A stretch of 64,000 nt of DNA from positions 186,001 to 250,000 of the forward strand of contig NIVC01000640.1 in assembly GCA_002269645.1 (NCBI GenBank). Direction: 5' to 3'. Under the pieces are notes generated by a model. It did not search any database. It worked only from the letters and a program-made list of their open reading frames with translations, and was not told the DNA's origin. Positions 4,283-63,227 of this stretch are shown piece after piece; the stretch's first letter is position 1, and the number at the start of each line of letters is the position of its first letter. Made by a program: the position numbers and the translations under genes. The DNA comes from Macrostomum lignano. Its lineage: Eukaryota.

Positions 4283-4304
4283 GAGTGCACTTGCACTGGG
4301 TTCT

Positions 4305-4315: not shown

Positions 4316-4568
4316 ATGTAAGAGCCGAGAATTTAGAGTAAGTTTACGAAGTATATTTTGATGCACGATAATTTACGAGCGATTAAATAGTCAGCGATGA
4401 TAGATCGATTAAAGTGACTCACCCAACTGGGGTGGTGGGCATGTACAGAGAAGAAAGCGAGATGCAAGTAAATATACTAATAGAGCAGCCCCCACCCCGA
4501 CGGCCCAAACCAAACGCAACCCTACAGTATCAATTTGACTTGCTACTCTCTGACCACAGTGGCATAAG

Positions 4569-15306: not shown

Positions 15307-16656
15307 TCAGAAAACGCGGAGAACGTGACCTGCACCACTATGTTGTAATTGGGTGTTGAGGTTCGGGGTCTGAGCTTTTATGTGCAGGGCCTCGAGAATT
15401 CTAAGTTTGGCGTCAGTATGGCTTTGGTCAATGATTTTAAAGTGTTCTTCTGGTTTGCAGTCATTGCAGTTAGTGCATTCAAGGAGGTGAGTTTGTATAG
15501 CGGATGGTTTGAGCCAGTGTTCCCTGATCCTCGTGTGTAGGTGTCTTTTGGTTTTCCCCACGTAGGAGACGCTCTGGTCCACAGAGCAGTTAAATTGGTA
15601 GACAACACCTGCACGCAGAGTACAAGGAACACGCGACTTTAATCTGCTAACAAAGTTCCCAATCTTGTGCGTGTGGAAGACGACCCGGATGTTACGATTG
15701 AAAGAGGCAAAGAATAACCTACGCATTCTGTTTTTAAAGGCTAGAGATGGAGGTCCGAGGAAGGGGAGACGCAGAATGGGTTCAAATTCTTCAGTGGTGA
15801 CAGATTGCTCAGGTTTTTGTTTGGTGATTTTGTCCGAGATGAACTTGTTGACGATTTTTTGGACCAGACAAACGGGGTAGTCATTTTGATGGAACAGTCT
15901 GGTGAGGAACTGCACCTCCCGGTCAAAGTTGATCCAGGTGTTACAGGTAGTGAAAGCTCTATGGAGCAAACACCTCACGAGCCCAGTTTTCCATTGTCTG
16001 GGGCAAGTGGCTTGGAAGTTGAGAATGAGATTGGTAAAGCTTTTCTTACGGAAGACTTTTGTGGAGAGGGTTTCCTTACTGTAGTCAATGTCAATGTCCA
16101 GGAAGGGGAGTCTTTGGTCAACAGCATGTTCAACCGTGAATTTTATGTTCTTATGAGTGGAGTTGAGAGCGTGGAGGAACTGATCAATTTTTTGCTCCTG
16201 ATCAAAGATGGCAAACGTATCGTCGACGTAGCGCCTGTAGAATTTGGGGGCACAGTTGAGAGACATCCAGTTTTCGGTTTCCCAATGGGCCAAGCAGACG
16301 TTCGCCAGAGTGGGGGCCAAGGGGCTTCCCATGGCACAGCCATCAACTTGCCTATAGTATTTATTGTCAAACATAAAGATTCCAGAGGTAGCAAAGCCCA
16401 GGAGTTTTCTAAAGGACGACTTGGCCATGGTGGGAGGGTTCGTGTTGTACACCAACTCAGTGGCATAGTCAATGGCCAGATCAAGGGGGATGTTGGTGAA
16501 GAGAGAAACAACATCAAAACTACATAGAGAGTCGGATCTGTTGAGCGTAGGGTTGAACTTTTGAAGGTCATTGAGGAAGTCTTTGTTGGATTTGGACATG
16601 AAGTTGGAAGGAATGCAGGGCTTGATAAGAGAATCCAGGTACTTGGCAACTTCAGA
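15307..16656 (-). CDS. PLE reverse transcriptase + GIY-YIG endonuclease (5'-truncated, no internal stops)
   Basis: SFDVVSLFTNIP, GCAMGSPLAP, RYVDDTF, LPFLD; GIY-YIG AGVVYQFNC...SYVGKT...RIREH. Confidence 0.93.
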   Translation of the reverse strand, partial: SEVAKYLDSLIKPCIPSNFMSKSNKDFLNDLQKFNPTLNRSDSLCSFDVVSLFTNIPLDLAIDYATELVYNTNPPTMAKSSFRKLLGFATSGIFMFDNKYYRQVDGCAMGSPLAPTLANVCLAHWETENWMSLNCAPKFYRRYVDDTFAIFDQEQKIDQFLHALNSTHKNIKFTVEHAVDQRLPFLDIDIDYSKETLSTKVFRKKSFTNLILNFQATCPRQWKTGLVRCLLHRAFTTCNTWINFDREVQFLTRLFHQNDYPVCLVQKIVNKFISDKITKQKPEQSVTTEEFEPILRLPFLGPPSLAFKNRMRRLFFASFNRNIRVVFHTHKIGNFVSRLKSRVPCTLRAGVVYQFNCSVDQSVSYVGKTKRHLHTRIREHWLKPSAIQTHLLECTNCNDCKPEEHFKIIDQSHTDAKLRILEALHIKAQTPNLNTQLQHSGAGHVLRVF

Positions 16657-17021
16657 GCTCAGACCCCAGCTCAGACCCCGAACCTCAACACCCAATTACA
16701 ACATAGTGGTGCAGGTCACGTTCTCCGCGTTTTCTGAACAGTGAGTGACACAGTCGTGCACGCTGTGTACACTTAGCTTGACGTTCAATTACCTAAGCTA
16801 GCTACCGCCCCTGATTCTGCCTTTTGACCACTGGACAAGAATTGTGTACATTTGGTTTAAATTTCATTCTCAATCTATAATTCTCTCTCCTACCTACTAT
16901 ACCTATGTATGTTGTTAAAGCCAAGTTGTAATCAATTGTTTTCATTCTTACCCTCCTTACCTGTGTACGTTGCAAAAACCAATATTTAATCAATCGCTTT
17001 CAATCGCAATTTCTCAAATCG

Positions 17022-23150: not shown

Positions 23151-25405
23151 CTGCTTTTTTTCCACCTGACAGTGTACTTTGTTGTTCTTATTGCTGTGTA
23201 TTAAACTGCCTAGGACCTTGTTGCACATGAGACTTTTCTATCAAAAATGGTATATTATGGCTGTATTTTTGACAAAATTTTTGGTATCATGTTAAACACT
23301 TTAATGTAATAGTGTATCTTAATATAAAACCAGTATTTGGCCCTTAGTAAAATTGAAAAATGTATCAATTTAGTGCAGTTCCTCATTTTTTCAAGGAATT
23401 ATTATCATTATAAAAAACTAGCTGTTGAAACCCACAGATTTTGAACCTGCTAAATTCCAACCTTTAGAACTATTTTTGTATATATTCCATTAAAAATAAA
23501 TATCATTAAAATATATGATATACTTATATTTATATATATAACTTGATCTTTACCTTTTCCATGGTTTCTATAATCTATTTGCTTACTTATAAGGTTTATT
23601 AAAAATCTTTGGCATAAGTTTAAACCTAGCCTTGCCATAAATACCTAATGAAAAAAAACAATAAAAAAGAATTTTTTTAAATAGTCTAGTATAAAAAAGA
23701 TAGAACTATATAACATGTATACTTTTTTGTAAAGAGTAAAATAAATTATATTAAGTAACATTTTTAATCCTGTTACAAATTTTGTATTCTAGAAAAAAGT
23801 TTTTATTTTTATTTTTTCCAAGAAAAATTGGATATAGAAAAGATTATATTGAAATCATTAAAAAAATGCAAGTAATAGCCAAATTGATTGGTTGCAGTCA
23901 TTGAAAGTTTATATCCCTCTTTTGATATATGAATACACATGTGGTGGATTTGATCTACTCTTATATACATTATGTCGCAGGGCTGATTCCTCTGTCTAGA
24001 AATCTCAGCCGCTGACACCAAGTTGTGCTAGGGGTGTTCCCATACGATACACAATCCTACCGCTATAACCAAAGTTGTCGTGGGGCTTACTTCTGTCCTC
24101 CAACTATCCCACTGTTGTCACCAAGTTGTAGCAGGTTTTCAATTTCCCTCTATTAAATTTATACTGCTGATACTAAATTCTGCCTTTGGTATTTCTAACT
24201 GTTTCTTAGAATTCCATTTGGATATGCTGGTAGCATTTTATGTATTAGTCTGGTAGCGTCTTATGTATTAGTCTGGTAGCATTCTTAGTATATGGCCTGA
24301 GCGGTCTTACTGGTATATGTACTTTCTCTCTCTAGTCTGGGCGTTACCGAGATTAGAGGGTCACAGCGATTACTCTTGGTACTACTCTTTGCATGAATCC
24401 CAATTGCAACCTCCAACCTTCTTTACAATACTCTTAGAAATGAACAATGATCTGAGAACGATTTATAGAACACGTTTTAAGCTTATAGCTATTGAACGAG
24501 TTATCTCTTCTTCTTCTCAGCCTGCTCCTATTTATACTATTCAAAGGCGTGTATTTTTAACAAATATTAAATATTGAGAATATATAGAATATGTAGAATA
24601 TATAGAATATTTTGTAGAATAAAATGAATTATTAGCGCAGATTCAAACTGTTATATTCCTAGAAACTATTAACCACTTCTACAATTATGCAGGGCATAAA
24701 ATTCTTTCATATATAGTTTATACTCAGGACTATGGGGTGTAGACAGCAATGTTGTTTTTAATATAGTTGATATACTATCTTGACCATTATAGGAACAAGA
24801 TGCTTTTTTATATAAATAAATTTTTGAAAGGCTTCATTATCATAACTATGACTCATGTCAGTTTATAACTAATTAGCTACCCTATGAAGTCAAGAAAAAT
24901 ACTTAAATTTTCATTTGTTTTTGCCAAAGTTTAGTCTATTTAGAAATTATAGAAATGCATAATAATACATATATTTTTTGTTGTTTTTGTCCAAATAATT
25001 ATCCAATCATTCTTATAGACCTTTTAGATCTTATTAAATAATTTTATTGGCAAAGCATATTAAAAAAGATATTTTAAAAGCAATTAGCTGTCATAATTTT
25101 AGGATATTGATTTTAACTCTGTTGTAAATCATTATTTATTTTTAACTTTATTGGTTATAGGCTTAGCAACAGTAATAATAGAATTAGATTACAAGCCTTC
25201 ATAGAAAACAATAATAGAAAATTTTATCAGGATATGGTGCAGCACATATCAGTTAGATTCTACTAGATAGACAGGCAAAGCTGCCCATTTCATATTTAAT
25301 AATTTTTAATACGCCACTCCCCAGAAGAGGCAGCAAGCTCGCAGCGGCGTTGGCAGTCGCCGCAGTCCTACTGGCTCTCCCAGACTAAAAGTTGAGACCA
25401 AGGCT

Positions 25406-27655
25406 ATGCAGAAAGCCGTTCACATGTCCTCTGCTGCCCCTCGGACAAGTTCGAGGCCGGCTAAACCGCCTAAGCCAGTGTACTGCCTGTGCCGGTCTAC
25501 CGACAGCACCAGGTTCATGATCGCCTGCGACAGCTGCGAGGAATGGTTCCACGGCGACTGCGTCAGTGTCACGGCCAGCCTGGCGGAGCGCATCGTTGCT
25601 TATTATTGCGAGGCCTGTCGCAAGCGAAATCGCCGCCTAGCTGTGCAATACAAACCGGCGGCATCGCCAACCGCTAACAGCAAGCCAGATGCCAAGCATA
25701 GGCGCAGGGGCAAACAGTCGGCCACGCGTAAGCGTGACGCCAGCGAGGCTTCTAAAAGCAGCAACAGCAGTCCAGCAGAGTCTGCAACCAGGAGAAAGGC
25801 TCGGAATGTAAAGAACCAGCAAGACGGCTCTAAAGCAGACGGGCCTGCTTCGACGCTGCAGAACGGACGCGGTGGGTCGCCGTCAGGGCGGCAGCAGCGC
25901 CGGCAGCGCGGCGGGCAGCAGAGTCGCCGAGCAGAACCTGCTCAGCCAGATTCGTCGCCGGACACTGCACGACGGCGCGGCAGGCGACGTGCGCGGCAGT
26001 CGCCGATTCGCCAAATTAGCAACGATGCCAACGACGAAGCTATAGTCGATGAAGCTTTGGACGATTCAATCGACGACGTGTCAGCCGAGCTGGTCCCCGA
26101 CGGTGGAGGCAGCGGCGGTGGTGGTGGCAACAACGGCATTGTTGTCGTTCCCGATCCGCCCTCGCTGCTGTCCAGCCCGTCTGCCGCCGCCGCCGCCGCA
26201 GCCGCTGCCGCTCTCGGCGCTGTCGTTAGCGACGTCGATGTTGACGAAGACGAAGCCGAAGCTGTTGTTGTTGACGCCGACGATATCGCCGTTGAAGAGG
26301 AGATGCTCCTGCCGGCCGAGGACGAGTCGGCCACCGACGACGAGCTAGAGACGTCCGGTTTCCGGCCGCCGCAGATGGAGTCGGACGTTGAGCAGGACCA
26401 GAACTCGCTGCTGGACGAAGACGACTTCGCGTCTACCAGCGTTTTCCGATTCCCGAAACGGTGCGGCTACTGCGAGGCCTGTCGGCTGAAGGCGGACTGC
26501 GGCCGCTGCGAGGTCTGCCAGGCCAAGAAGCGCTACCCGAGCTTCAAGCTGGACAGCGTGGACTGCTTGGCCCGGCAGTGCCGCACAATGGCCAAACTCG
26601 GCGGCCGACTCGGCTCTCTGCCCTTTCCCATACAGAAGCGCGGCCGAGGCCGGCCCTCCAAGGCGTCGCTTAGCAACGAATATTTTCTCTACTTATCCGC
26701 CGGGGCCAGGCCGCGTCGGCGCGACGATTATAGCGGCGGCCATCAGAAGCAGCAGCGACTGTCGCCTGCGCCGGCAGCTCTGTTGCAGCAACAGCAGCAG
26801 CAAAGACCTGCCGCCGCTGTAGCCGCCCCAATTGCCGACTTGGGGCGCAAACGGCGGCATCATCAGCAGCACCAGCGTCTGCCTGTTGACGACGGTCTTT
26901 TAGTTGTCCAGCCGGCTTCGCGACCGCAGTTTTGCACGCCGTGAGTCATTACTAATTCAAAATTCTGTTGTCAATAGCCGTCTTAGCTCAAGGCTCGAAC
27001 CCATAGATCTTTGTCCATACTCGTAGACCACTGAGGATTAGTTTTCAGCGGTGCAAGCGAACATCTTTTCGTCCCCGAAGTCATTTTTGGGTGTCATTTT
27101 CTATCCATAGGCCATAGATCTTATATTATACACCCAGTCAAACCATTGAGTCTTATGGGAAGCTTTCCAAGAAGCGGTGATTTCAGCTAGTGTTCAGTAG
27201 TTAATGCGCATGTTTGTCAGTAGCTGAAAAGAGTATTAAATTAACCTTTTTATTCAGCTGTGTCAGCGTAAGACTTGAAATGACTTTGTATGATCAGTGT
27301 AAGATTATAATCAGCAAGAGTGCGTTTTAAATTAACAATAATTTTCTACTCATAAAATTACGAATGGTTTTTGGCTAGCGGTTAGAGCGCCGGACTCACG
27401 ACTCAAAGGTCGGGGGTTCGATTCCTGACCCATTCGGAACAATTTGTGTCCTTGAGCAAGACACTTAACTCTGCATTGCTTCAGTTCACCCAGCTGTAAA
27501 ATGGGTGCCAGCATTAGCTGGGGTAATTGAGGCTGTGTGGTGACCCCCCAGTCCTTGGACTGAACAGCCGTACGCAGCCTTCAGATGCGCCTTGCAATAG
27601 CTGCGGCTGAGCTGTCGGTTGCACAGCTGGCCATTAGGACAGGTGCAATCTATTA

Positions 27656-27717
<62 letters not shown>

Positions 27718-28078
27718 GTTTAAAGTGTAAAGTATATGTTGTTCTATCATTGCATTCGTATTGCATCTTTGACTATATTAATTAACTGCCAGGTACGGCC
27801 TGAGCTACTCCGATCACTCCTATTGCAAGCACCACGCCTCAGGCGGCTGGCAGCGTCAGTCGCCTCAACCAGTTAGCCAGCTCGTATCGCCAGTCAGCTC
27901 CGCTGCTGCCGTTGCTGCCGCTTTGTCAGCCGCCGCGTCGGTGTCGGCCTCAGTTGCTCAGCCATTTAGCCAGCAGCAGCAGCTGATCCAGCAGCACCAG
28001 CAGCAGCAGGCATTCTACACGCTGAACGATGACACGGACAATTTGAAGGTTACCTGGCCTGAGGAGGCGGCCGCTTAA
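25406..28078 (+). CDS. CXXC1/Cfp1-like protein: PHD + CXXC + AT-hook, short Gln/Ala-rich tail (~606 aa, 2 exons)
   Basis: Exons 25406-26940 and 27793-28078 join in phase 2 (GTGAGT/CCAG). PHD 25481-25618 (YCLC...FMIACDSCEEWFHGDC...YCEAC), 8-Cys CXXC 26462-26581, KRGRGRPSK AT-hook. The start could be the second Met. Confidence 0.82.
27365..27717 (+). mobile_element. tRNA-derived SINE with (TAT)n tail
   Basis: A-box-like TGGCTAGCGG, B-box GGTTCGATTCC (27415-27425), central GTGTCCTTGAGCAAGACACTTAAC...CCCAGCTGTAAAATGGGT, ~22 TAT units. Sits in the CXXC gene intron. Confidence 0.85.
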
Positions 28079-29168: not shown

Positions 29169-31019
29169 AAAGGTAAAAATGATTTGGGATTAGTATTTGC
29201 AGTCAGAAGTTAATGCTGCGTGTAATATACCAGTAACTCACAGCTGCAGGCAATTGAGCAATTATTAAATGTATGATGAAGTCTGCTATTGTGTTTCTGT
29301 CACAGGCTGTCAGTTCTGAAATTTGGCCAGCCTGTGTTTCATTTATATTGAACATTTGCTCGCCTCATCCCAATTCCTCTGCAGCTATATGCATACATGC
29401 TACTTACTAGTAGCTGTACTAGTAGTATATGTAGCGCTAAATTGCCTGGTGTTGCGTGGCAATTTTTTGCTTGTTATTATTTTTATTGTTAATTTGGCAT
29501 GTTGAAGAATTGATAAAATATCGAAATCTGATTACTTATTTCATCAGTAGCATCGTCAGTTAATTATTAATTTTTTATTTACTTAGAAACAAACCGGAAT
29601 GCCGAATTGCTGTTTTTGTATGTAGCAATATTGTTTGAACTGAAATTTGGATTAAATCATTATTTATTTTTGTTATCGATTGGTAACAACCTTGCCTACA
29701 TGTATTGGCTTCAACTGTATTATGCATTAGCCAGCCCCTCTGACTTCGTATCCTAGGCAACAGCAATCTCTGGTTTTGTGTGTATCACTATATGCTCCAT
29801 TTGCATAATTTTTTTATTGTTTAATCCCGTTTGTACAGCATCTCACTCATCATCTAGTGTACAGGTGTAGCAAGTAACCCTCAGTTTTTGTTTGAAAGCA
29901 TATTTTTAACAGAACCATTTTTTACAGGTCTCACTGGTCCTGTCTCTGTACAGTAGTATATAAGTAATCTTATTGTGCACCCCCCTAGCCCACTGTTTGG
30001 TTGCACTGCTCTGCATGATTCTCTTCGCTGTATACGAACTTCTAATCATCAAGTCTGTCTACACGTGTCCCGATTATATAGCAACTTATAACCTTAGTAA
30101 TATTTTTATATTAAGAAATCGAAATTTCAAATATATACCATTTTTTCTCCTATTTAAGTGTGCACCAGTTGCTTTGCTGCTATCTTGACTGACAAAATTA
30201 GTCATTTATAATTGACAAATTATTAATGTTTCATTTACCTTTAAATTGTATTAACTGACGACATATGAAGGTCAACACTCAAGGCACAGAAAGTTGTACA
30301 ACTGCACATGCCTGACGATTAGACAGTCAGGGCTGCTGTACACCTTGTGTGAGCGTGTGTGAGTGCGTGACTGAGTACAGTAAGTGCTCAGGACTCAGAT
30401 TGCCTCACTGCTGGTAATGCGCCTCAAGGATGCTCATTGCACTCTTGCAAATATCGCGGAAACCGCTACTCAAATATTACGAACTGGTCACTAGAAGTAG
30501 TATCTACTGCAGCCTCTGCAGCATTCCAACTGAAACTGTTCTGTCCTTAGCATGCTAAGTTTTGCAGTCAAAGCAAATCTGTTACTAAGCAGATAAGCGC
30601 CACTAGCTGGTCTTGCGCAGTGTTAGCTCTGGCTCTCTCTCTCTCCCTCTCTCTCTTAGCACTTGGTTTGGAACGCATTGGCTTTATCCAATACGATTAA
30701 GAAACTCGGAAGCTATTCCGCCTGAGCATGTCAGGGTTGAGCTTGTTTATGCGAGCCGAGCCCGCCCCGCCAGGCACACGGATCCAATCTTATCAATTCT
30801 TGCTGTGCGAGAGGCCGCCCGCCAGTCGCAGGACTAAAAAAGCCGAGCTAAAAATGCTTAAAGCCCATGAATTCGGCAAATCTTCGCCCTTTTTGGTTCG
30901 GGCGTTGCCACCAGCTCCAAGCGATCGAGACTCTCAAAGCCCGCAGCTGAAGTCGTTGCCGCCAGCTCCAAGCGATCGAGACTCAGAGTTGGTGTTGCTA
31001 TTTGGCCACGCCGCAATCG

Positions 31020-34000
31020 ATGTACCGAGTCGCCATTGCCGCACTCGCCGTCGTCGCCCTGACGCTGACGGCGGCCAGAGGGCAGCCGCAGCCGGTCGGA
31101 GAGGCCAATGTGACCATCGGAAGCTGCTCGATCGTCGGCTCCGAGTTCAATCTGACGATGCCCGACGGTCTCGGCAGCCGCCTGCTCCGCTTCCTGCGGG
31201 TGCCGTACGCCGAGCCGCCAGTCGGCGACAGGCGGTTTGCCAAGCCGCAGCCGTTCAACTTCAGCCGCTCCGACTGCCGGCTGACCGGCGAGGAGGCCGC
31301 CGACCCCGAGAAGAACTTGCTCCGCCTCAGCATTCGAACTCCCGACCTTGCCCCCGCTGATCCGCTGCCCGTGCTGGCGCTGCTGCTCGACGGCTCCTCC
31401 GACTTCAATGACAGCCTCGGCCACGAAGTCGGCGACGCTATCGGCACAAGTGTCGTCATGGCAACCATCGGCAGTCGATTCGGCGTCCTTGGCAACGTGC
31501 CGGCAGGGCAGAACAACGGCCTTGAGGATCAGCGCCTGGCGCTGGAGTTCCTGCGCGACCAGCTGCACCGATTCGGCGGCGACCCGGCGCGAGTGACGCT
31601 GGCCGGCCACGGCGCCGCCGCTGCCGCTGTCGGCCTGCACGCGGTTGGAAGCGGCGGATTCTCGCGCGTCGTCATGATGAGCGGCTCCATCGCCGCGCCG
31701 CTGGGCTGGTCGGCCTCCGCCGAAGTGGCCGCCGCCCTGGACCGCCAGCTGGCCGCCAGCCTGAGCTGCGGCATCGGAGATGAAGGCCGCCTGCCGCTCG
31801 ACTGCCTGCGGAGCAAGCCGCTGAAGGACCTGCTGGATGCTGAGTCGCTTCTCCGGCGGGACTACGGCGACGGCGCTGGTCGGTTCGCGCCGTCCTTCAA
31901 CGCCTCCTCGCTGCCGGACGCGCTTTGGCGCTCTGGCGCCTTCAACGGCTCCCTGATGATCGGCGTCGGAACTGGCGTCGGCCCGGCGCTGGCGGAGCTG
32001 GCGCTTCGCGTGCAGGGCGCCGACTGGGGCGCGCTCGACCAGACGGCATTTGAGACCGTGAGTGGCGCGCTGCTCTGAGCTGGGGCTGAGCTGAGCTCCC
32101 TGATCCCTTCATGCAGTGCCGTTCCAGCCATGCAGCTGCCTGACCCACCTGGCCACTGCAGCTGTCACTCACCTGACCCACCTGGCCACTTTGCAGCTGT
32201 CACTCACCTGACCCACCTGGCCACTGCAGCTGCCACTCACCTGACCCACCTGGCCACTTTGCAGCTGTCACTCACCTGACCCACCTGGCCACTTTGCAGC
32301 TGTCACTCACCTGACCCACCTGGCCACTTTGCAGCTGCCACTCACCTGACCCACCTGGCCACTTTGCAGATCCTGGATCGCGAGTTTGGCCAGTTTCCCC
32401 GCCTCCACTCGGCCGGCCGAAACGCCTCGGTCAGCGGGCGCCGCTACCTCCGGCTGACTCTGTCCGACTGGCCGCACTTCGCCTACGGCGGCCGCGTCCG
32501 CCAAATTTTGGCCCGCGCGCTGTCCGACTTTGGCGCCGTCTGTCCGGTTTGGGAGGCCGCCAACGACATGATTGGCTCAGGCCGGGTGTTTGTCTACCTG
32601 CACGATGAGGACGGAGATCCCGCAGCTGCACTGTCGGTGGCGAATGACGCGAAGGTGCTGCTGGGAGAGCCGCTGGTGCGAGCGAACTACTCAGCTGAGC
32701 ACAGGAGTCTGTCCAGAATCATGATGCAGCACCTGGTAGATTTTACTGCTAGTGGAGGTGAGTTCTTCAGGCAGCTGTGTAATTGAAATGCCTGGTCAGA
32801 TTTGCTGCTTCAAGAGCCGCTTTCCTTGCCTCTTTCAGCTCCCAGTCCCGGCTGGCCCTCCAGCAGCGCCGGCGCCTTTGATTTCCTGCGCTTCGGCGCC
32901 AAAACCGGCGTCAATTCGACAAGCGGCGGCTTCGCCTTCGAGCCCGGCCGCTGTCCACTCTGGTCGACCGAGATGTCGCTGGCCAGCAACCTGTCCGCCT
33001 CGCCGCCTCCTCCGCAGCCTCCGCCGCCGCCGCCGCCTCCGCCACCGCGAACCTCGCCAGGAGGTGCGCAGCCGTTCTCGAACACGGTGCTGCGGAACTA
33101 CAGCGTGAATATTCTCGGGCTGGGCAGGACGGTCGGCCAGACGATCCGCACCCCCGCTGGCAAAGTGATGACGCAGTTTCTCGGCCTGCCCTACGCCAAG
33201 CCTCCCATCGGAGGGAAGCGCTTTGCTGTTCCGGAGCCGGCGGATGCGTTCGGTGAGCTGCCGCTACCAGCCTCGAGTCCTGCATTGAGTCCCGCATTGA
33301 GTCCCGTATTGAGTCCCGCATTGAGTCCCGCATTGAGTCCCGCATTGAGTCCCGTGTTGAGTCCCGGATTGAGTCCCGGATTGAGTCACGAATTGAGTCC
33401 CACATTGAGTCCCGGATTGAGTCCCGGATTGAGTCACGCATTGAGTCCCGGATTCCTGCATTGAGTCCCGCATTGAGTCCCGCATTGAGTCCCGTATTGA
33501 GTCCCGCATTGAGTCCCGCATTGAGTCCCGTATTGAGTCCCGTATTGAGTCCCGGATTGAGTCCCGGTTGAGTCACGCATTGAGTCCCGCATTGAGTCCC
33601 GTATTGAGTCCCGTATTGAGTCCCGGATTGAGTCACGCATTGAGTCCCGGATTGAGTCCCGGATTCCTGCATTGAGTCCCGCATTGAGTCCCGTATTGAC
33701 TCCCACATTGATTCCCATATTGAGTCCCACATTGAGTCCCACATTGAGTCCTGCCCTAGCAACTAAGCGTTGATCCACGACCGACTTCCTTTTACCCTGC
33801 AGGCGAGGACTTCCTAGCGATAAGCCCGAAGCCCGCGTGTCCGCAGCCGGGGCCGCTCGCGACCTCCGAGGACTGCCTCTACCTGAACTTGTGGACACCC
33901 AAGCACTCGGACCGGGAAGTTGAAAAACTCCCCGTCTTGGTGTTCCTTCACGGCGGCTTCTTTCAGACTGGCGACGCCTTCGATGAGCGCTGGCGGGGAA

Positions 34001-37000
34001 GCCACGTGCTGGACCAGGTCGATGCGGTGGTGGTGACGGTCGCCTACAGACTGGGTGAGTGGGTGAGGAGAGGGTGAGGAGAGGGTGAGGAGAAGGTGAT
34101 TGAGCAGAGGGTGACGAGAGGGAGACGATAGGGTGAGGAGAGAGGGTGAGGAGTGGGTGATGAGAGGGTGAAGAGAGGGTGAGGAGATGGTGAAGTGGTG
34201 AAGAGAGTGTGAAGAGAGGCTGAGGAGATGGTAAGTGAGGAGAGGGTCCTCAGTCTTTTGGTGGGCTGCAGCAGCAATGGCAGGTGATGGGATCTGAGGT
34301 GCTCAGGCCTTTGGTGAGCTGCGGCAGCAATGGCAGGTGATGGGATCTGAGGTGCTCCGGGCTGCAGTAGCAAAGGGGATCTTCCAGCTTCAGTCGCAAT
34401 GCCTGCTGATTCCCAGGTGCTCTGGGCTTCCTGTGGCTGCAAAACGCCTCGGTGCCCGCAAACCTTGGCCTCCGAGACCAGGCGCTGGCCCTCCAGTGGG
34501 TGCGCTACAACGTGCGCTTTTTTGACGGCAGCCCCAGCAAAATCAGCCTGGTGGGCGCGGAGGCCGGCGCTGCCTCCGTCGGCTTCCACCTGCTGGCGGA
34601 GTCGCTGCAGTTCCAGCGCGCCGTCCTTCTGTCGGGCTCGCCGAACTCCCCCTTCGCGGTGTCGCCAATGCCAGACGAAGTGCGGGCGATGCACAAAAAT
34701 TTTACAGGTGAGACACCTGCAGATGCCCGCTTGCTTGCAGTTTAGGAGTACTTTGAGTACTTTGCTTGTGCTCAGCACAGTCCGCGCAAGTATTATCTGC
34801 CAGACTGCACAGGTGTCAGCTCGGCCATCCCTTGACTCCTCAGCCAGCTACTTGAGCTGCAGCACTCATCTCCCAGACTGCACAGCTCAGCCTCCCCTCC
34901 GACTCCTCAGCCAGCTACCTGAGCTGCAGCACTCATCTCCCAGACTGCACAGGTGTCAGCTCAGCCACCCCTCCGACTCCTCAGCCAGCTACCTGAGCTG
35001 CAGCACTCATCTCCCAGACTGCACAGCTCAGCCTCCCCTCCGACTCCTCAGCCAGCTACCTGAGCTGCAGCACTCATCTCCCAGACTGCACAGCTCAGCC
35101 TCCCCTCCGACTCCTCAGCCAGCTACCTGAGCTGCAGCACTCATCTCCCAGACTGCACAGCTCAGCCTCCCCTCCGACTCCTCAGCCAGCTACCTGAGCT
35201 GCAGCACTCATCTCCCAGACTGCACAGCTCAGCCTCCCCTCCGACTCCTCAGCCAGCTACCTGAGCTGCAGCACTCATCTCCCAGACTGCACAGCTCAGC
35301 CTCCCCTCCGACTCCTCAGCCAGCTACCTGAGCTGCAGCACTCATCTCCCAGACTGCACAGCTCAGCCTCCCCTCCGACTCCTCAGCCAGCTACCTGAGC
35401 TGCAGCACTCATCTCCCAGACTGCACAGCTCAGCCTCCCCTCCGACTCCTCAGCCAGCTACCTGAGCTGCTGCCAGTCGGCCCCCGCTGAGCTGCTGGAC
35501 TGCCTGCGCAACCTCACCTCCTCGGAAATCGTCAGCGCGGCCGCAGACTTCCAGCGCGACGTCGCCCGCCTCCAAGCGCCCTTCGTCGCCTTCGGACCCG
35601 CCCTGGACGCCGACTTCCTGAAGTCCGACCCGTGGTCGGTGGACGCCTTGCCGCCGGTTCCGCTGCTGCTGGGCGGCGTGGACTCCCCCGGCAACACGCT
35701 GGTGCGGCTGCTGCTGCCCGATGGCCTGAACGTGACGCGAAACCGCGTGCTGGAGGTGAGGTGCACAGCACCTGGGCCAGTCACTGCTGAGTCCCGCACT
35801 CCTCTCACCACCCACAGCACCTGGCCCAGTCACTGCTGAGTCCCGCACTCCTCTCACCTCCCACAGCACCTGGCCCAGTCACTGCTGAGTCCCGCACTCC
35901 TCTCACCTCCCACAGCACCTGGGCCAGTCACTGCTGAGTCCCGCACTCCTCTCACCTCCCACAGCACCTGGCCCAGTCACTGCTGAGTCCCGCACTCCTC
36001 TCACCTCCCACAGCACCTGGCCCAGCCACTGCTGAGTCCCGCACTCCTCTCACCTCCCACAGCACCTGGGCCAGTCACTCCTCTCACCTCCCACAGCACC
36101 TGGGCCAGTCACTGCGCCACTTCCCCCGCTTCGGCGAGTCGCTGTCCTCGGTCGGGCTGGAGGCCGCGAGTCGCCGCTTCGCCGAATTCCCCAGCTCGAC
36201 CGCTGACGCCGGCGTCGGGGACGTCAAGGAGGCCCAACTGCTGTCGCGGGCGCTGGGCGATCGGCACTTTACCTGCCCTAGCTGGAACTTCATGGCCAGA
36301 GCGGCTGCTTTGAGCACTGCTCAGGTTTTCGGCTTCCTGCTCGCCGAGCCGGCCGAGGAAATCGGGGATCGGCTGGTCGGCGCCAGCCTCTGTGAGCAGG
36401 CGGGGCTGAGGGGAGCGGGGAAGTCAGGCAGGTGGTCAGACAGTATGAGCTCGCTCAGTTTAACACTGAGGCACTGGTTAACCAGTGCAAATCGCCACTC
36501 ACTGAAGTGCTCCAAAGCCCCTCCAACCGCTTAACTCCCACTCACTGAAGTGCTCCAAAGCCCCGCCAACCGCTTAACTCCCACTCACTGAAGTGCTCCA
36601 AAGCCCCGTCAACCGCTTAACTCCCACTCACTGAAGTGCTCCAAAGCCCCGCCAACCGCTTAACTCCCACTCACTGAAGTGCTCCAAAGCCCCGCCAACC
36701 GCTTAACTCCCACTCACTGAAGTGCTCCAAAGCCCCTCCAACCGCTTAACTCCCTCTCACTGAAGTGCTCCAAAGCCCCGCCAACCGCTTAACTCCCACT
36801 CACTGAAGTGCTCCAAAGCCCCTCCAACCGCTTAACTCCCACTCACTGAAGTGCTCCAAAGCCCCGTCAACCGCTTAACTCCCACTCACTGAAGTGCTCC
36901 AAAGCCCCTCCAACCGCTTAACTCCCACTCACTGAAGTGCTCCAAAGCCCCTCCAACCGCTTAACTCCCACTCACTGAAGTGCTCCAAAGCCCCGCCAAC

Positions 37001-38029
37001 CGCTTAACTCCCACTCACTGAAGTGCTCCAAAGCCCCGTCAACCGCTTAACTCCCACTCACTGAAGTGCTCCAAAGCCCCGCCAACCGCTTAACTCCCAC
37101 TCACTGAAGTGCTCCAAAGCCCCTCCAACCGCTTAACTCCCACTCACTGAAGTGCTCCAAAGCCCTCCAACCGCTTAACTCCCACTCCAGCGGATGACGC
37201 CGTCTACGCCTTGGGCAGCCCTGCGAGACCCTCCAAGCCGCTTGGCGAGGCGCGCGCCCAACTGTCGGGCTTCCTCGTCCGCAGCCTCGTCGAGTTCGCC
37301 AACAGCGGCAACGTGAGCTGGGAGGCCTACGGAGCCGACAGCCGGCGGGTGCTGCTGCTGCGCGACTCTGGAAGCGGCGGCTGGAACGTCAGCTGGCCGC
37401 CTCGCTACGTTGAGCACGCGCTCCGCGGACTGGACTGCGCCTTCTGGGACCAGACGCTGCCGTGCGTCGCCTCGCCTGACTGCATCAACGACCTCCCTAC
37501 GCCCTCGCCGACGACACCGACGGAGACACCGACGGAGACACCAACGGCACCACAGACGGCGACGCCGCAGACGGAGATGACCGATTCTACTGGAACACAG
37601 GTGACTGGCCAGTCAACTAATTATGACTCTACCTTGTCCTCAAGCTCTACAGGTCCCACCGATCATTCAGAAATCACTGACTCAACACCCGCACCTACTA
37701 CTCCGATCCTCCCTTCCGAGACTCCGAACCCGGATGCAGGCGGCCTCGAAACCTGGGCAGTTGCACTCATTGTGGTCTTCTCCGTTGTCGGCGCTGGCCT
37801 GCTGATTGGCAGCGGCTTCTTGCTCTACAGGTGTTATTTTCGGAGTCAGTCAGATGGAGAGAACTTTCCGATGGAGTCAAACTCTGGTAGAGCAAATCCA
37901 CCAAAGAGGCAAGCAGTTCAGCAGCCACCGCCGCAGCAGCAGTATCGTCAGCATGAGCAGCCAGAAAATTATCTGCGGCAGTCGAGGCCGACTGAAGCCG
38001 GCAACAGCAACGGCGGATATACTGGCTGA
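31020..38029 (+). CDS. Type I membrane protein with two tandem non-catalytic carboxylesterase/cholinesterase-like domains (~1272 aa, 8 exons)
   Basis: Exons 31020-32057, 32370-32757, 32839-33252, 33803-34054, 34417-34707, 35454-35755, 36097-36391, 37191-38029; all GT-AG, 3819 nt, phases consistent. Signal peptide; two copies of FLxxPYAxPP-G-RF; SEDCLYLNLWTP; Thr/Pro stalk; TM WAVALIVVFSVVGAGLLIGSGFLLY. Confidence 0.85.
32137..32369. repeat. 33/35-bp intronic tandem repeat ending at the acceptor
   Basis: Unit CTGTCACTCACCTGACCCACCTGGCCACTTTGCAG, ~7 copies. Confidence 0.93.
33281..33752. repeat. 12-bp intronic tandem repeat (ATTGAGTCCCGC)
   Basis: About 39 copies. Confidence 0.95.
34055..34245. 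repeat. Degenerate purine-rich GAGGGTGAGGA repeat
   Basis: Begins at the donor GTGAGT. Confidence 0.75.
34828..35470. repeat. 67-bp tandem repeat spanning an intron/exon boundary
   Basis: About 9.5 copies; each contains CTCCTCAG|CCAGCTACCTGAGCTGC. Confidence 0.94.
35768..36115. repeat. 49-bp tandem repeat spanning an intron/exon boundary
   Basis: About 7 copies; each contains CACAG|CACCTGG(G/C)CCAGTCACT. Confidence 0.93.
36492..37188. repeat. 43-bp intronic tandem repeat
   Basis: About 16 copies containing CTTAAC and TCCCACTC; the last copy runs into the acceptor CAG. Confidence 0.95.
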
Positions 38030-46900: not shown

Positions 46901-48851
46901 TATAGATAGTCTTGCGGTTTGTATTCTCAGCTCAGATAGTCATGCGGTTTCAGTTCTCAGCTCAGATAGTCATGCGGTTTGTGTTCTCAGCTCAGATAGT
47001 CATGCGGTTTGTATTCTCAGCTCAGATAGTCATGCGGTTTCAGTTCTCAGCTCAGATAGTCATGCGGTTTGTGTTCTCAGCTCAGATAGTCATGCGGTTT
47101 CAGTTTTCAGCTCAGATAGTCATGCGGTTTCAGTTCTCAGCTCAGATAGTCATGCGGTTTGTGTTCTCAGCTCAGATAGTCATGCGGTTTGTGTTCTCAG
47201 CTCAGATAGTCATGCGGTTTGTGTTCTCAGCTCAGATAGTCATGCGGTTTCAGTTCTCAGCTCAGATAGTCATGCGGTTTCAGTTCTCAGCTCAGATAGT
47301 CATGCGGTTTCAGTTCTCAGCTCAGATAGTCATGCGGTTTCAGTTCTCAGCTCAGATAGTCATGCGGTTTGTGTTCTCAGCTCAGATAGTCATGCGGTTT
47401 GTGTTCTCAGCTCAGATAGTCATGCGGTTTCAGTTCTCAGCTCAGATAGTCATGCGGTTTGTGTTCTCAGCTCAGATAGTCATGCGGTTTGTGTTCTCAG
47501 CTCAGATAGTCATGCGGTTTGTGTTCTCAGCTCAGATAGTCATGCGGTTTCAGTTCTCAGCTCAGATAGTCATGCGGTTTGTGTTCTCAGCTCAGATAGT
47601 CATGCGGTTTCAGTTCTCAGCTCAGATAGTCATGCGGTTTCAGTTCTCAGCTCAGATAGTCATGCGGTTTCAGTTCTCAGCTCAGATAGTCATGCGGTTT
47701 GTGTTCTCAGCTCAGATAGTCATGCGGTTTCAGTTCTCAGCTCAGATAGTCATGCGGTTTGTGTTCTCAGCTCAGATAGTCATGCGGTTTGTATTCTCAG
47801 CTCAGATAGTCATGCGGTTTCAGTTCTCAGCTCAGATAGTCATGCGGTTTCATTTCTCAGCTCAGATAGTCATGCGGTTTGTCTTCTCAGCTCAGATAGT
47901 CATGCGGTTTGTATTCTCAGCTCAGATAGTCGCGGTTTCAGTTCTCAGCTCAGATAGTCATGCGGTTTCAGTTCTCAGCTCAGATAGTCATGCGGTTTGT
48001 CTTCTCAGCTCAGATAGTCATGCGGTTTGTCTTCTCAGCTCAGATAGTCATGCGGTTTGTCTTCTCAGCTCAGATAGTCATGCGGTTTCAGTTCTCAGCT
48101 CAGATAGTCATGCGGTTTCAGTTCTCAGCTCAGATAGTCATGCGGTTTCAGTTCTCAGCTCAGATAGTCATGCGGTTTCAGTTCTCAGCTCAGATAGTCA
48201 TGCGGTTTCAGTTCTCAGCTCAGATAGTCATGCGGTTTCAGTTCTCAGCTCAGATAGTCATGCGGTTTCAGTTCTCAGCTCAGATAGTCATGCGGTTTCA
48301 GTTCTCAGCTCAGATAGTCATGCGGTTTCAGTTCTCAGCTCAGATAGTCATGCGGTTTCAGTTCTCAGCTCAGATAGTCATGCGGTTTCAGTTCTCAGCT
48401 CAGATAGTCATGCGGTTTCAGTTCTCAGCTCAGATAGTCATGCGGTTTCAGTTCTCAGCTCAGATAGTCATGTGGTTTTGTGTTCTCAGCTCAGATAGTC
48501 ATGCGGTTTGTGTTCTCAGCTCAGATAGTCATGCGGTTTCAGTTCTCAGCTCAGATAGTCATGCGGTTTGTGTTCTCAGCTCAGATAGTCATGCGGTTTC
48601 AGTTCTCAGCTCAGATAGTCATGCGGTTTGTGTTCTCAGCTCAGATAGTCATGTGGTTTTGTGTTCTCAGCTCAGATAGTCATGCGGTTTGTGTTCTCAG
48701 CTCAGATAGTCATGCGGTTTGTGTTCTCAGCTCAGATAGTCATGCGGTTTCAGTTCTCAGCTCAGATAGTCATGCGGTTTGTGTTCTCAGCTCAGATAGT
48801 CATGCGGTTTGTGTTCTCAGCTCAGATAGTCATGCGGTTTCAGTTCTCAGC
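46901..48851. repeat. 30-bp minisatellite (TTCTCAGCTCAGATAGTCATGCGGTTT + GTG/CAG), ~65 copies
   Basis: Strict register; variation is almost confined to one triplet. Confidence 0.98.
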
Positions 48852-50448
48852 TTTTAGCTTTAGCTTTTAACGTTAATTTCTGCTTGTGTACAGCAAAGCC
48901 TGTGATAAGATTGTTAGCGCAAACAGTGGCGCACGCGTGGGTGGCGGCTCTGCAAAATGTTAGTATTTCTCTAATAATTGAGATCCGATAGATAGGCTAC
49001 TAGTTGTCGGGGCTTCTTAACAGCGCCAAGCCCCAATAAACGAATCGAACGGAAGTGCTTTTTGGCTAGGGTAACCTCTCTCCTCTGTTTGGGGGGGGGG
49101 CTGGTTTAGCTAAGAAATTGATTGACACTAGCGATAGGCATGCGATAGGTTTGGAGGGAAGGGGGGTTGGATCGTGTATGCACACTCCACGGACTGATAG
49201 CAGGCACTGAGGAATGGCCCGGAAGGGGGGGGGCTAAAATCTTGGGAATTTTACCCCGCCTGTCTAAGCAGTCAGCCAGGAAGCAACTCTAAATTGCCTA
49301 CTTTGCCGCGCTTACCTTGTCTATAATACTTATCTAGAGCATAACTCTTCTATGAACCCTTTGCCCAAAATAAGGCAGTGCATTTCTTTTGTTTTTTAGC
49401 TATTAGCTATGATTTACAACGGTTTTGTTCAACCATTATTTACAAATTTTGTTTTTTTTATCCTGGGTGTGTTTAAGCGTCCGAAAATGCAAGTCCAAAT
49501 TCAGTACGCCAGGTGGCATCAGTCAGTAAAAAAATAAATAATCAAATAAACTACTAACATCTATGCCCTACCCTTTACACTGCCGAGCATCTAACTCAGA
49601 AGTTGCAGAAGCATTACTCAAATTTGACAATTTATAGAAGTCTTGAAATCCCAAGAATCACAATATTTATAATATTATTTAATATGCTATAAGTATTCAT
49701 CAGCGCACTAACCGCAGCCATCTCTGCTTAACTTGTGGCAGCGGCGAAGGCGCTAACCCACTGGGCTAACGACCCCTGTCCTGAATGCGCCACCCAAAGC
49801 TTTATTTAGGAGTCCATGATCAAGTATAGAATCTGCCGCAACTGTTCCCATCTCCTTTAGCCCTGGTATCTGAACGCATAAGGTTTGCTTGGACTAATCA
49901 CCGGGACAGATTAAATGAATGATAAAAACGCAGACAAAAGTGTGCTGTCCGCGCGTTTAGTAGGTTTATATATATATTATAGTTTGGCGGCTGGTGCGCG
50001 TCCGTCAGTGTTGGCATTTTGCTGGGCCAGTGTACGAGCGTGTCAATGTAAAGCGGCACAGCTCTTCTTTCCAATAATTTCAGTCGCATATATTTTGCAC
50101 ATATTATATATATTTATATAACTGACCAAGTTATAAGTGTCAGAACTTTCTGGACACCCCTCGTATATATAAACTATTGATACTTTGTGGTTGGAAGTTA
50201 AGGAATTAAAAATATTTGGTAAATATGACTTACAAAACATACATGTACTGTTTTCCTAAAATGTTTACTGCATGCCTGTTAGTGGAAAGATTTACGGGTT
50301 AAAAGGGTGTTCTAGGAAATGCGATTCTTTAAAAGTGTGTTACTTTAGACAGCTCAGTGCTTCAATCACGCGTTCACTTTTATTGTGATGCATGGCAAAC
50401 TGCCAGCAGCTGTTACAGTTAGGCTACCAGCTGCCTTAGCCGGTTGCC

Positions 50449-53400
50449 ATGACAACGCCGAACTCCGGGCCCGGCAGTCGGCGGGGCTCCGGCGGCGGCG
50501 GCAATAGCGCGGTCGCTGGCGGCACCAAAACGCCGGTCAGAGGCGGCGCGGGCTCAACCGAGGCCAGCCAGCGCGGCTCGCCGAGTCTCAACGCGGCCTA
50601 CAGCTGCCTGCGCTGGGCCGAGTGCCCGCAGAATCTGCTAGACGATCCAGAAGGTGTACTACTGCTGAAACAGTTCATGGAGGACATGAACCCGTCGCAT
50701 GCCCGCGCATTCGATTTCTATTTCGCTGTTAAAGGTTTAAAATCCGGCTGCCAGCTCGAAGGCTTAGATAATCCGCGGAAGCTGGTCCGCCTCATCAATA
50801 AGAAATACGTGAGCAGAGAGGACTGCGTCCCAATCAGCGCCGCGACCCGGGCCGCTATCCAGGCCCGAGTCCGTTCCGGGGACGCCGATCCGGGCCTGTT
50901 CGACCCGGCCCTGGACGAGATTGTGCAATTCCTCACCCACACTGTGTACCCAGCCTTTCTCAAGTCCGATCTGTACATCAACTACGTGGCCTGCGTTGGC
51001 AGCGGGTCCGCCTGGCAGCCCTATCTGGCTAGCGGCCCTGAGCTGGCGGCCTCTCCTGCCGGGCACACGCCGCGCAGCCTGCCAACTGTGCACGAGGATC
51101 GGGAACTGCAACAGCAGCTGACCGCTGCAGCATCCGCGGCCGCTTCAACCGCCGCCCCTGGCTCCGGCGGTCCGGGTTCGCGCGCCGGTTCCGTGCCCCG
51201 CTCTCGTTCCTCGCCGTCGCCAGCGGCAGCTGCCGGCGTTGTTGCAGCCGTGTCATCAGCGTCGGCTTCAGCTGCCCCGGTGCTGGACCTGACTATCAAG
51301 AATCTCTACGCTACCAGATTTCAGCGCGGCCGCGCTTCGCTGCCAGAGTTTGCCGGCGGGCCGCAGTCTGGGTGAGAGTTCGCTCGGCCATTCTGAGCTT
51401 GTGACTGACTTTCCTAGCTAGCTAACTATTTTTTAGTATATGGATTTTTTAGTGACAGTGAATATCAGTGACCAATTTAGTGGCAGTGAATATCAGTGAC
51501 CAATTTAGTGGCAGTGAATATCAGTGACCAATTTAGTGACAGTGAATATCAGTGACCAATTCAGTGACAGTGAATATCAGTGACCAATTTAGTGACAGTG
51601 ATTATTAGTGACCAATTCAGTGACAGTGAATATCAGTGACCAAATTAGTGACAGTGAATATCAGTGACCAATTTAGTGACAGTAAATATCAGTGACCAAT
51701 TCAGTGACAGTGAATATCAGTGACCAATTTAGTGACAGTGAATATCAGTGGCAAATTCAGTGACAATGAATATCAGTGACAAATTCAGTGACAGTGAATA
51801 TCAGTGACCAATTCAGTGACAGTGAATATCAGTGGCAAATTCAGTGACAATGAATATCAGTGACCAATTCAGTGACAGTGAATATCAGTGACCAATTCAG
51901 TGACAGTGAATATCAGTGGCAAATTCAGTGACAATGAATATCAGTGACCAATTCAGTGACAGTGAATATCAGTGACCAATTCAGTGACAGTGAATATCAG
52001 TGACCAATTCAGTGACAGTGAATATCAGTGACCAATTTAGTGACAGTGATTATTAGCGACAGTGAATATCAGTGACCAATTAAATGACAGTGGTTATTAG
52101 TGACAATGAATATCAGTGACCAATTCAGTGACAGTGAATATCAGTGACCAATTTAGTGACAGTGATTATTAGTGACAATGAATATCAGTGACCAATTCAG
52201 TGACAGTGAATATCAGTGACCAATTAAGTGACAGTGGTTATTAGTGACAATGAATATCAGTGACCAATTCAGTGACAGTGAATATCAGTGACCAATTTAG
52301 TGGCAGTGAATATCAGTGACCAATTCAGTGACAGTGAATATCAGTGACCAATTTAGTGACAGTGAATATCAGTGAACAATTTAGTGAAAGTGAATATCAG
52401 TGACCAATTTAGTGACAGTGAATATCAGTGACCAATTTAGTGACAGTGAATATCAGTGAACAATTTAGTGAAAGTGAATATCAGTGACCAATTTAGTGAC
52501 ACTGACAGTTAGTGATATTCTGGAACATTTTCTTATCTAGACAGAATCAGGGTACTATTTATTTGCTTTAATTGAAAAATTCTGAATTTTTTGATAATAC
52601 GCCAGAACAATAGATTAGCCTAGCTTGTGTATGGAGAAACAGAAAGTATAAATTGGCGAGTGCTTATGTCAGCCTGCTGGTCTCTGGCTTTGCCCGTGGT
52701 GCCGCCGCCGCCGCCTGTGATGTGCGTCTGTGTGTGAGCCGCCGGCCGTGCCGGTAAATCCGCCTGCCCTGCAATCTAATTCAACCCCCACCCCTCAGCC
52801 GTCATCTCGGGCGGCTTCTCCCCTCCTTCCACTTTATCCTCACCTCGCCCATTATTCCTCCTCTCTCCTCTTCTCCCATACACCTCGCTGCCTTTGAACT
52901 CTGCCGCCGTCTACTCACTACTGATGCCGCCGCCGCTCTGCCGACAGCTCAGTTAGTAAGCCAAAAACAGGCTTGGCGAGAGGCAACAGCGCCTGAATTC
53001 TGTGCCAAAAAGGGGGACTTTCTACTAAAACTGAGACGGCTTTTTTCTGCTATTCAAACCTGGCCGTATTATGATTAACCTGCTAGCTTCCCAATCGGCC
53101 TGTCTGCTTTTGTTCTCCGTTGGTTTTGAGTTAAAAAGCAGCTGAGAAGCAGTGAGGTTGCAGTCTGTAAAATTTCCCTAGCCGGCAACTCACTTCCTCT
53201 TTGTAGTTCCGCCTCCGTCTGTCGTTTGGCCTACCAAACGTTTCTCTTTCTGTATGTCTGTCGGCTGTTTCTCGTTCACTTTCTGGTTCGCCGCCTTTTG
53301 TATTGAAGCCGCTACGGGAGGGTCCTCCTGGCTTACCCTGCCTCCCCCTCCCCCCCCGGGCCGCTCTCACCAGCTTTCATTTTTTGCCGCGCCCTGAGCG

Positions 53401-59623: not shown

Positions 59624-63227
<3,604 letters not shown>

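Follow-up and report, generated by a model that had tools for sequence, protein, structure and literature searches.

The DNA analysed here is a 64-kb window of the flatworm Macrostomum lignano, a stretch of 64,000 nucleotides that corresponds to GenBank contig NIVC01000640.1 (assembly GCA_002269645.1) and is identical to it over 27 kb. Homology searching assigned the region 31020-38029 on the forward strand to gene BOX15_Mlig025559g3 (best match protein P0001, 1232 aa), which encodes a predicted membrane protein with two tandem cholinesterase-like domains. The region was read and translated in three frames, and the eight coding blocks obtained were joined via GT-AG introns. The resulting model contains a 3819-nt open reading frame (ORF) for 1272 aa, and all of its seven introns, which an earlier sequence-only reading of this DNA had proposed, are of the GT-AG type. 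Adding one more GT-AG intron (37601-37720, 120 nt, in frame within the stalk) reproduced the GenBank protein P0001 residue for residue. The GenBank models for the two copies of the gene, g3 and g1, both excise this intron, and when it is kept the stalk gains 40 residues with the frame unbroken; since it is in frame and 40 residues long, stalk length may vary through alternative splicing.

The M. lignano GenBank annotation was produced with StringTie and TACO on the genome from RNA-seq data, together with a de novo transcriptome and TransDecoder ORFs, and its gene boundaries draw on trans-splicing and poly(A) evidence (PMC5730564). Because this annotation was built from RNA-seq, the model of BOX15_Mlig025559g3 is transcript-supported, and the gene is expressed enough for RNA-seq assembly. 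GenBank and UniProt already list its product as a hypothetical protein, with two COesterase matches. The sequence-only reading had treated the splice between 32757 and 32839 as the critical join between the domains; this splice actually lies inside domain 1, and the domains are joined within exon 3. The part of domain 1 encoded by exon 3 includes its last conserved Cys and Trp, and domain 2 has neither a start codon nor a signal peptide of its own. Because one uninterrupted exon runs from the last part of domain 1 through the linker into domain 2, BOX15_Mlig025559g3 is a single gene spanning both domains; for two genes to be present, a transcript would have to start or end within exon 3. The claim of one gene instead of two therefore stands, with exon 3 open across the domain junction and the transcript-derived GenBank model reproduced exactly. 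A tblastn search found no further COesterase copies in the window, and an Rfam scan of the window gave no match.

All parts of the protein that had been described from the letters alone were found again: a signal peptide, two folds, a poly-proline linker, a stalk, one transmembrane helix and a tail of about 66 aa ending in GYTG, which is no class I PDZ motif. In the hydropathy profile only two segments, the N-terminus and aa ~1183-1206, stand out as hydrophobic. The stretch between signal and transmembrane helix, the ectodomain, holds all 17 N-glycosylation sequons, and the segment preceding the helix contains 24 Thr, 13 Pro and 10 Ser in 84 residues; in the predicted topology the inner flank of the helix is positively charged. 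These features predict a glycosylated protein at the cell surface. Pfam gave no match to the stalk, transmembrane helix or tail, and no family beyond alpha/beta-hydrolase models anywhere in the protein. In the g1 copy the linker is three residues shorter, with a 6-nt gap in exon 3.

Both domains matched the Pfam COesterase family (PF00135, curated cut-off 27 bits), domain 1 with 155 bits (E = 3.6e-45, aa 54-485) and domain 2 with 297 bits (E = 4.6e-88), the two matches that the earlier reading had expected. Domain 2 additionally matched acetylcholinesterase (AChE) in the PDB with an E value of 9e-53. When domain 1 was modelled alone with AlphaFold2, the predicted local distance difference test (pLDDT) was 82 and the predicted template modelling score (pTM) 0.89, and Foldseek aligned the model to human AChE with a template modelling (TM) score of 0.80. 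Domain 2, modelled within the ectodomain run, reached a pLDDT of ~90 and a TM score of 0.84 against the same structure. In the whole-ectodomain model domain 2 was good and domain 1 poor, because the single-domain homologues had all aligned to domain 2, and the run came with no inter-domain confidence values. AlphaFold2 thus confidently modelled each domain as a cholinesterase fold, domain 1 when run alone. The second and third disulfides of the family are kept in both domains (C250-C262 and C404-C514 in domain 1), and the first, that of the Cys-loop, in domain 2 only (C626-C638). In domain 1 the Cys (omega) loop is deleted, with 14 alignment columns missing, and in domain 2 it is shorter by 7 columns; in AChE this loop bears the choline-binding Trp.

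The catalytic positions were read from a hidden Markov model (HMM) built on 47 single-domain relatives, to which every domain was aligned, and HMMER alignments to the structures of AChE and butyrylcholinesterase (BChE) agreed with the positions read in this way. A Ser-Glu/Asp-His triad is replaced by Gly/Val/Val in domain 1 and by Glu/Pro/Leu in domain 2; the oxyanion-hole HGG is lost in domain 1 and kept in domain 2, and neither domain possesses a full Cys-loop. The elbows and His sites that had been called dead by eye, as well as the missing HGG of domain 1, were borne out by the alignment (see table). From sequence and models, both domains are predicted to be folded cholinesterase-like domains incapable of serine-esterase activity. 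Because the triads are lost, the HGG of domain 1 is lost and both Cys-loops are truncated, the protein as predicted can neither act as a serine esterase nor bind acetylcholine in the conventional way. In the same HMM column, an exchange of the nucleophile Ser for Asp or Glu recurs across many unrelated non-canonical cholinesterase-like proteins, examples being Macrostomum domain2-type sequences, Parastrongyloides, the Hofstenia 'AChE 3' (GNDAG) and a beetle neuroligin (GHDTG); some proteins with this exchange retain an intact Glu and His.

Table. Features of BOX15_Mlig025559g3 and other features of the window, in window coordinates.
Feature	Position	Strand	Reading	Basis
Whole coding region	31020..38029	+	BOX15_Mlig025559g3	gene model and GenBank coding sequence
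Exons 1-4	31020-32057, 32370-32757, 32839-33252, 33803-34054	+		GT-AG junctions
Exons 5-8	34417-34707, 35454-35755, 36097-36391, 37191-38029	+		GT-AG junctions
Exon 3	32839..33252	+	last ~55 aa of domain 1, linker, first ~45 aa of domain 2 (FLGLPYAKPP)	one open frame
Signal peptide, aa 1-21	31020..31082	+	MYRVAIAALAVVALTLTAARG	hydropathy only
Cholinesterase-like domain 1, aa 22-530	31083..33002	+	exons 1, 2 and start of 3	Pfam, HMM columns, AlphaFold2, Foldseek
Poly-proline linker, aa 530-546	33000..33050	+	SPPPPQPPPPPPPPPPR, inside exon 3	sequence
Cholinesterase-like domain 2, aa 569-1095	33117..37495	+	exons 3-8	Pfam, PDB AChE, AlphaFold2, Foldseek
Thr/Pro/Ser-rich stalk, aa 1096-1182	37496..37756	+		composition
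Transmembrane helix, aa 1183-1206	37757..37828	+		hydropathy
Cytoplasmic tail and stop codon	37829..38029	+	66 aa ending GYTG	predicted topology
Nucleophile elbow (canonical GESAG), domain 1	31605-31619	+	GHGAA, Ser to Gly	HMM alignment
Nucleophile elbow, domain 2	34554-34568	+	GAEAG, Ser to Glu	HMM alignment
Acid (canonical Glu)			Val in domain 1, Pro in domain 2	HMM alignment
His position, domain 1	32637-32666	+	Val within VANDAKVLLG	HMM alignment
His position, domain 2	36388..37216	+	Leu within LSDDAVYALG, spanning intron 7	HMM alignment
Oxyanion HGG, domain 1	31386-31394	+	LDG	HMM alignment
Oxyanion HGG, domain 2	33949-33957	+	HGG kept	HMM alignment
Direct repeat, two copies	30907-30984			
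Retrotransposon ORF	206-2692	+	reverse transcriptase, RNase H	
Retrotransposon ORFs	2763-4366	-	gag zinc-knuckle, aspartyl protease	
ORF	15307-16695	-	reverse transcriptase, weak GIY-YIG match	
Upstream neighbour gene	25337-28078	+	PHD-finger and CXXC zinc-finger protein	
ORF	50449-51375	+	RGS domain	
Large satellite arrays	6634-10165, 46904-48852, 51448-52505, 54909-55951, 61199-62153			

Relatives were sought with HMMER, run exhaustively against 1.84 billion representative proteins, together with cluster look-ups; word-index homologue searches had returned mostly low-complexity or bacterial esterase matches, and it was HMMER that exposed the multi-domain relatives. The nearest relatives of each domain were M. 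lignano proteins only, and this species was found to hold at least four further domain1-domain2 units. One of them, P0059 (A0A1I8I8B3), is covered by a single alignment across both domains at 42% identity, P0067 (A0A1I8F227) is a frameshifted copy of the P0059 paralogue, and P0058 (A0A1I8G704) is a 3380-aa ab initio model with three consecutive domain1-type/domain2-type units. In all three proteins the domain 1 elbow reads GHGxx and that of domain 2 G-x-[ED]-A-G, with Pro at the acid and Leu at the His position of domain 2. When five two-domain units were aligned (32-41% identity), the disulfide cysteines and the GHG and G-x-[ED]-A-G elbows proved invariant. The paralogues thus resemble our protein in the paired domain1-type and domain2-type unit, at 32-42% identity, and differ from it in that their domain 1 keeps the His, their linkers lack poly-Pro and HGG is kept in the P0058 units only. 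Single-domain relatives also occur in M. lignano: BOX15_Mlig032086g1 (P0135) is a dead cholinesterase-like protein with a GASYG elbow, a His-to-Leu exchange and a transmembrane helix, and P0148, which is triad-impaired, has a GLDAG elbow and a transmembrane helix.

A bootstrapped neighbour-joining tree of HMM-aligned domains (63 taxa in the tree) placed all Macrostomum domains in one group, inside which domain1-type and domain2-type sequences separate. Domains 1 and 2 of BOX15_Mlig025559g3 were never sisters, and domain 1 joined domain 1 of P0059 with 100% bootstrap. In every replicate the smallest clade with all seven tandem domains held 8-11 of the 63 taxa, and the nearest neighbour outside Macrostomum was an acoel 'acetylcholinesterase 3' with the elbow GNDAG. 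The sequence-only reading had noted that the two domains differ in intron pattern. This is true of five introns, which are not shared; however, column 366/367 of the alignment carries an intron in both domains, intron 1 in domain 1 and intron 6 in domain 2, each in phase 0. Because of the grouping in the tree, the shared position and phase of introns 1 and 6 and the Macrostomum-only relatives, our sequence comparisons indicate that an internal duplication occurred in an intron-bearing ancestor within the Macrostomum lineage and that the two-domain unit was duplicated afterwards.

In order to estimate constraint, g3 was set against its g1 counterpart, which lies on a different contig (L002); the two copies arose very recently, with an overall synonymous divergence (dS) of 0.03, and the counts are small. 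Domain 1 has accumulated 5 non-synonymous and 15 synonymous changes, giving a ratio of non-synonymous to synonymous divergence (dN/dS) of 0.12 (p = 8e-6 against neutrality). For domain 2 the corresponding values are 21.5, 10.5 and 0.71 (p = 0.18), and the difference in dN/dS between the two domains is significant at p = 0.009. From these counts the more degenerate-looking domain 1 is clearly constrained, under strong purifying selection. Over the long term both domain types retain their cysteines and characteristic replacement residues across the paralogues, and the Pro and Leu replacements of domain 2 recur there.

Dozens of predicted proteins carrying 2-8 COesterase domains also came up in the HMMER search. 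In many of these every triad is intact and a hydrophobic segment stands at each domain start (e.g. Lineus P0063); such all-active proteins have the appearance of tandem genes merged into one. Set apart from them is a group of proteins in which an N-terminal signal is followed by tandem domains and a single transmembrane helix at the C-terminus. Two domains, both dead, are present in Lytechinus pictus and L. variegatus (P0096; XP_054767789), in Diadema antillarum and D. setosum (P0104; XP_071500051) and in the nemertean Lineus longissimus (P0113; XP_064622620). An active-like domain 1 is combined with a dead domain 2 in Acanthaster planci (two proteins, XP_022079595 and XP_022100211), Saccoglossus kowalevskii (XP_006825066) and Glandiceps talaboti (XP_077983973), and Styela clava (XP_077968891) has four domains, three active-like and one dead. 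All these RefSeq tandem proteins are labelled 'uncharacterized protein'. They resemble the M. lignano protein in having a signal peptide, two cholinesterase-like domains, a transmembrane helix and a tail, with both domains dead in the urchins and the nemertean; they differ in that domain 1 of the sea star and hemichordates has an intact triad and that the membrane-proximal domain of the urchin is neuroligin-like, neuroligins being the best PDB match of Lytechinus domain 2.

In the tree, the ambulacrarian first domains cluster together, apart from the Macrostomum domains, and the second domains form one clade in echinoderms (99% bootstrap) and another in hemichordates (100%). Because these domains cluster by position apart from Macrostomum and urchin domain 2 is neuroligin-like, the ambulacrarian tandem family looks separate in origin from the flatworm one. 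An unnamed family conserved in echinoderms and hemichordates (P0096, P0104, P0087, P0103, P0090, P0076) combines an N-terminal cholinesterase- or esterase-like domain with a second cholinesterase-like domain, a transmembrane helix and a tail. The second domain was neuroligin-like in the one member tested (Lytechinus), and the others group with Lytechinus in the tree; by sequence, these look like neuroligin-type proteins with an extra cholinesterase domain. Our search of the accessible literature found no paper on any tandem or two-domain cholinesterase- or carboxylesterase-like protein. The earlier proposal of a new architecture holds insofar as no description was found, but the layout recurs in the M. 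lignano paralogues and in other phyla. The same reading had allowed that such proteins might prove widespread and annotated; this is nearly the case, with RefSeq predictions in several phyla, yet all of these are unnamed and uncharacterised.

Within BOX15_Mlig025559g3, six of the seven introns (introns 1 and 3-7, within 32058-37190) consist almost wholly of minisatellite, each with its own unit (35, 12, 11/41/53, 67, 49 and 43 bp). The unit reaches or crosses the 3' splice site in four of them (introns 1, 5, 6 and 7), and in introns 5 and 6 it takes in the first ~17-20 nt of the next exon, giving tandem copies of the acceptor. Intron lengths in g3 and g1 are strongly different (312 vs 617, 746 vs 137 and 341 vs 807 nt). 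A direct repeat of ~27 bp (GCC[A/G]CCAGCTCCAAGCGATCGAGACTC) is present in two copies ~50 bp apart just upstream of the start codon. Minisatellites are general across the window and not peculiar to this gene, the large satellite arrays including units of 20 bp in 132 copies and 30 bp in 65 copies. Other parts of the window carry retrotransposon ORFs, an upstream neighbour gene for a CFP1-like protein annotated with 629 aa, and an ORF with a regulator of G-protein signalling (RGS) domain. In the ORF that joins a reverse transcriptase to a GIY-YIG match, the latter scored 20.3 bits, below the Pfam cut-off of 22.6; the pairing of reverse transcriptase and GIY-YIG endonuclease is typical of Penelope-like elements.

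Taken together, these results make it probable, in our judgement, that the product of BOX15_Mlig025559g3 is a type I membrane glycoprotein, 1232-1272 aa long, whose two dead cholinesterase domains have a binding, adhesion or receptor role at the surface, and that the protein belongs to a Macrostomum-restricted radiation of membrane-anchored, triad-impaired cholinesterase-like genes and is not a neuroligin orthologue. The central claim of the sequence-only reading, two tandem catalytically dead cholinesterase-like domains in a type I membrane protein, agrees with Pfam, the HMM and hydropathy. The protein would enter the endoplasmic reticulum via its signal peptide, be glycosylated and be displayed as a type I surface protein. 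There, a mucin-like stalk would hold the two proline-linked cholinesterase-fold domains off the membrane, and the domain surfaces would bind partners in a non-catalytic binding, adhesion or receptor role, as in the single-domain neuroligins, gliotactin and neurotactin. An adhesion or receptor function is suggested by this analogy.

Several observations weigh against this interpretation. Neither Pfam nor reading of the sequence found a recognisable motif or PDZ ligand in the tail, the string 'Mlig025559' occurs in none of the searchable full texts, nor in the supplements of three M. lignano transcriptome papers, and no functional, localisation or expression-pattern data for the gene were found in the literature searched. 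Except for g1 and g3, the paralogue models belong to an older ab initio annotation that contains frameshifts and may have merged some genes. The tree was made by a simple method, with weak bootstrap values of 37% for the domain1-type and 54% for the domain2-type clade, and a GC- and Ala-rich composition could pull Macrostomum sequences together. On ~32 changes, domain 2 is not distinguishable from neutral.

The protein could instead be a non-catalytic surface or shed protein that does not act in adhesion, such as a soluble-ligand receptor or scavenger, or one whose domains are folding or dimerisation modules as in thyroglobulin. Both domains keep the fold, and cholinesterase-fold proteins in general, including neuroligins and the cholinesterase-like domain of thyroglobulin, dimerise by a four-helix bundle (PMC5943944). 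The tail, moreover, lacks scaffold-binding motifs, and the Ser-to-Asp/Glu exchange recurring in non-catalytic relatives hints at a conserved use of the pocket. However, no ligand or partner is known, the Cys-loop lining the gorge entrance is truncated in both domains and the protein contains no extra domains that would need a dimerisation module; we regard this alternative as possible, though on balance somewhat unlikely. The linker between the domains (~34 residues, including a rigid poly-Pro rod) has in principle the length for intramolecular pairing, and the tandem pair could form the bundle within one chain or show two different faces. It would go considerably further, and we think it improbable, to propose that the two dead domains pack via a four-helix bundle into a single-chain 'built-in dimer', a neuroligin-type adhesion receptor, and that flatworms, nemerteans and ambulacrarians evolved tandem dead-cholinesterase membrane proteins by convergence, which would make these a class of surface-recognition molecules not recognised so far.

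Some of the data would also fit a loss of function, in which the gene, a recent product of a lineage-specific expansion, does little or nothing and is drifting towards a pseudogene. The dN/dS of domain 2 is not significantly below 1, domain 1 is the most degenerate of its type, its HGG (in the P0058 units) and His being kept in paralogues, and the gene is absent from the germline, neoblast and differential-expression tables searched. This is nonetheless quite improbable given a 3.8-kb ORF that is intact, over 8 exons joined at canonical splice sites, in two or more copies in the genome, expression sufficient for RNA-seq assembly, strong purifying selection on domain 1 and structural cysteines conserved across paralogues. 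We give hardly any credence to an active hydrolase with a non-canonical nucleophile of the Glu748 type in domain 2. Some alpha/beta hydrolases do employ Asp as nucleophile, and an acidic residue at this site is conserved in the domain2-type paralogues (GAEAG, GVEAG, GDDAG); but the general-base His of domain 2 is Leu and its acid is Pro, and domain 1 lacks all three residues along with the oxyanion hole. It is likewise scarcely conceivable that the model is an erroneous fusion of two adjacent esterase-like genes. Merged tandem genes are indeed suggested by many multi-COesterase proteins in the databases, with all triads active (e.g. Lineus P0063) and signal-peptide-like segments at each domain start. 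Here, domain 1 end, linker and domain 2 start lie in one exon with no stop, domain 2 lacks a start codon and signal peptide, the RNA-seq-derived model joins both domains and the domain1-domain2 unit recurs in the M. lignano paralogues; a merging artefact was therefore rejected.

M. lignano is a tractable animal in which transgenesis has been reported (PMC5730564), as have knock-down studies. The expressed tandem dead-domain genes of the flatworm, with similar layouts in echinoderms, hemichordates and a nemertean, make up a branch of the family that is small and so far unstudied. Should the paired domains function as a covalent dimer or supply two distinct binding faces, they would illustrate how an enzyme fold can be re-used for surface recognition. 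The value of this result is as a pointer for family curators and flatworm biologists; the sequence is already public and no long-standing question is opened.

Important organisers of synapses and epithelial junctions are found among the non-catalytic cholinesterase-like proteins, neuroligins and gliotactin being examples; to our knowledge all characterised members have a single cholinesterase-like domain. BOX15_Mlig025559g3 shares with these cholinesterase-like adhesion molecules (neuroligins, gliotactin, neurotactin, glutactin) an extracellular cholinesterase fold without the catalytic Ser, and a Ser-less ectodomain displayed on the surface is what its dead domains and predicted topology point to. 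With neuroligin and gliotactin it has in common type I topology, a Ser/Thr/Pro-rich stalk and a short tail, and with neuroligins the Gly at the nucleophile position, seen here in domain 1. It differs from them in having two cholinesterase-like domains instead of one, no PDZ-binding C-terminus, a truncated Cys-loop and a lineage-specific family. The likeness to neuroligin did not hold up in a best-match test. The best 60 PDB matches of each M. lignano domain were all cholinesterases or carboxylesterases, with no neuroligin among them, while the positive controls ranked neuroligins first: the Ceutorhynchus beetle neuroligin P0007 scored 374 bits to neuroligin-1 vs 234 to AChE, and urchin domain 2 behaved likewise. 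Neuroligin orthology was rejected on this basis. Nor does the protein have the layout of thyroglobulin, in which a cholinesterase-like domain is added to repeat domains, as only alpha/beta-hydrolase Pfam models match it. For both domains the closest matches, in sequence as well as in structure, are AChE and BChE, which share with both the second and third family disulfides, and with domain 2 alone the first; the M. lignano protein differs from these enzymes in its lost triads, the lost oxyanion hole of domain 1, the deleted or shortened Cys-loops and a transmembrane anchor of its own. We conclude that BOX15_Mlig025559g3, a gene annotated yet uncharacterised, is a tandem-domain version of the non-catalytic cholinesterase-like surface proteins.

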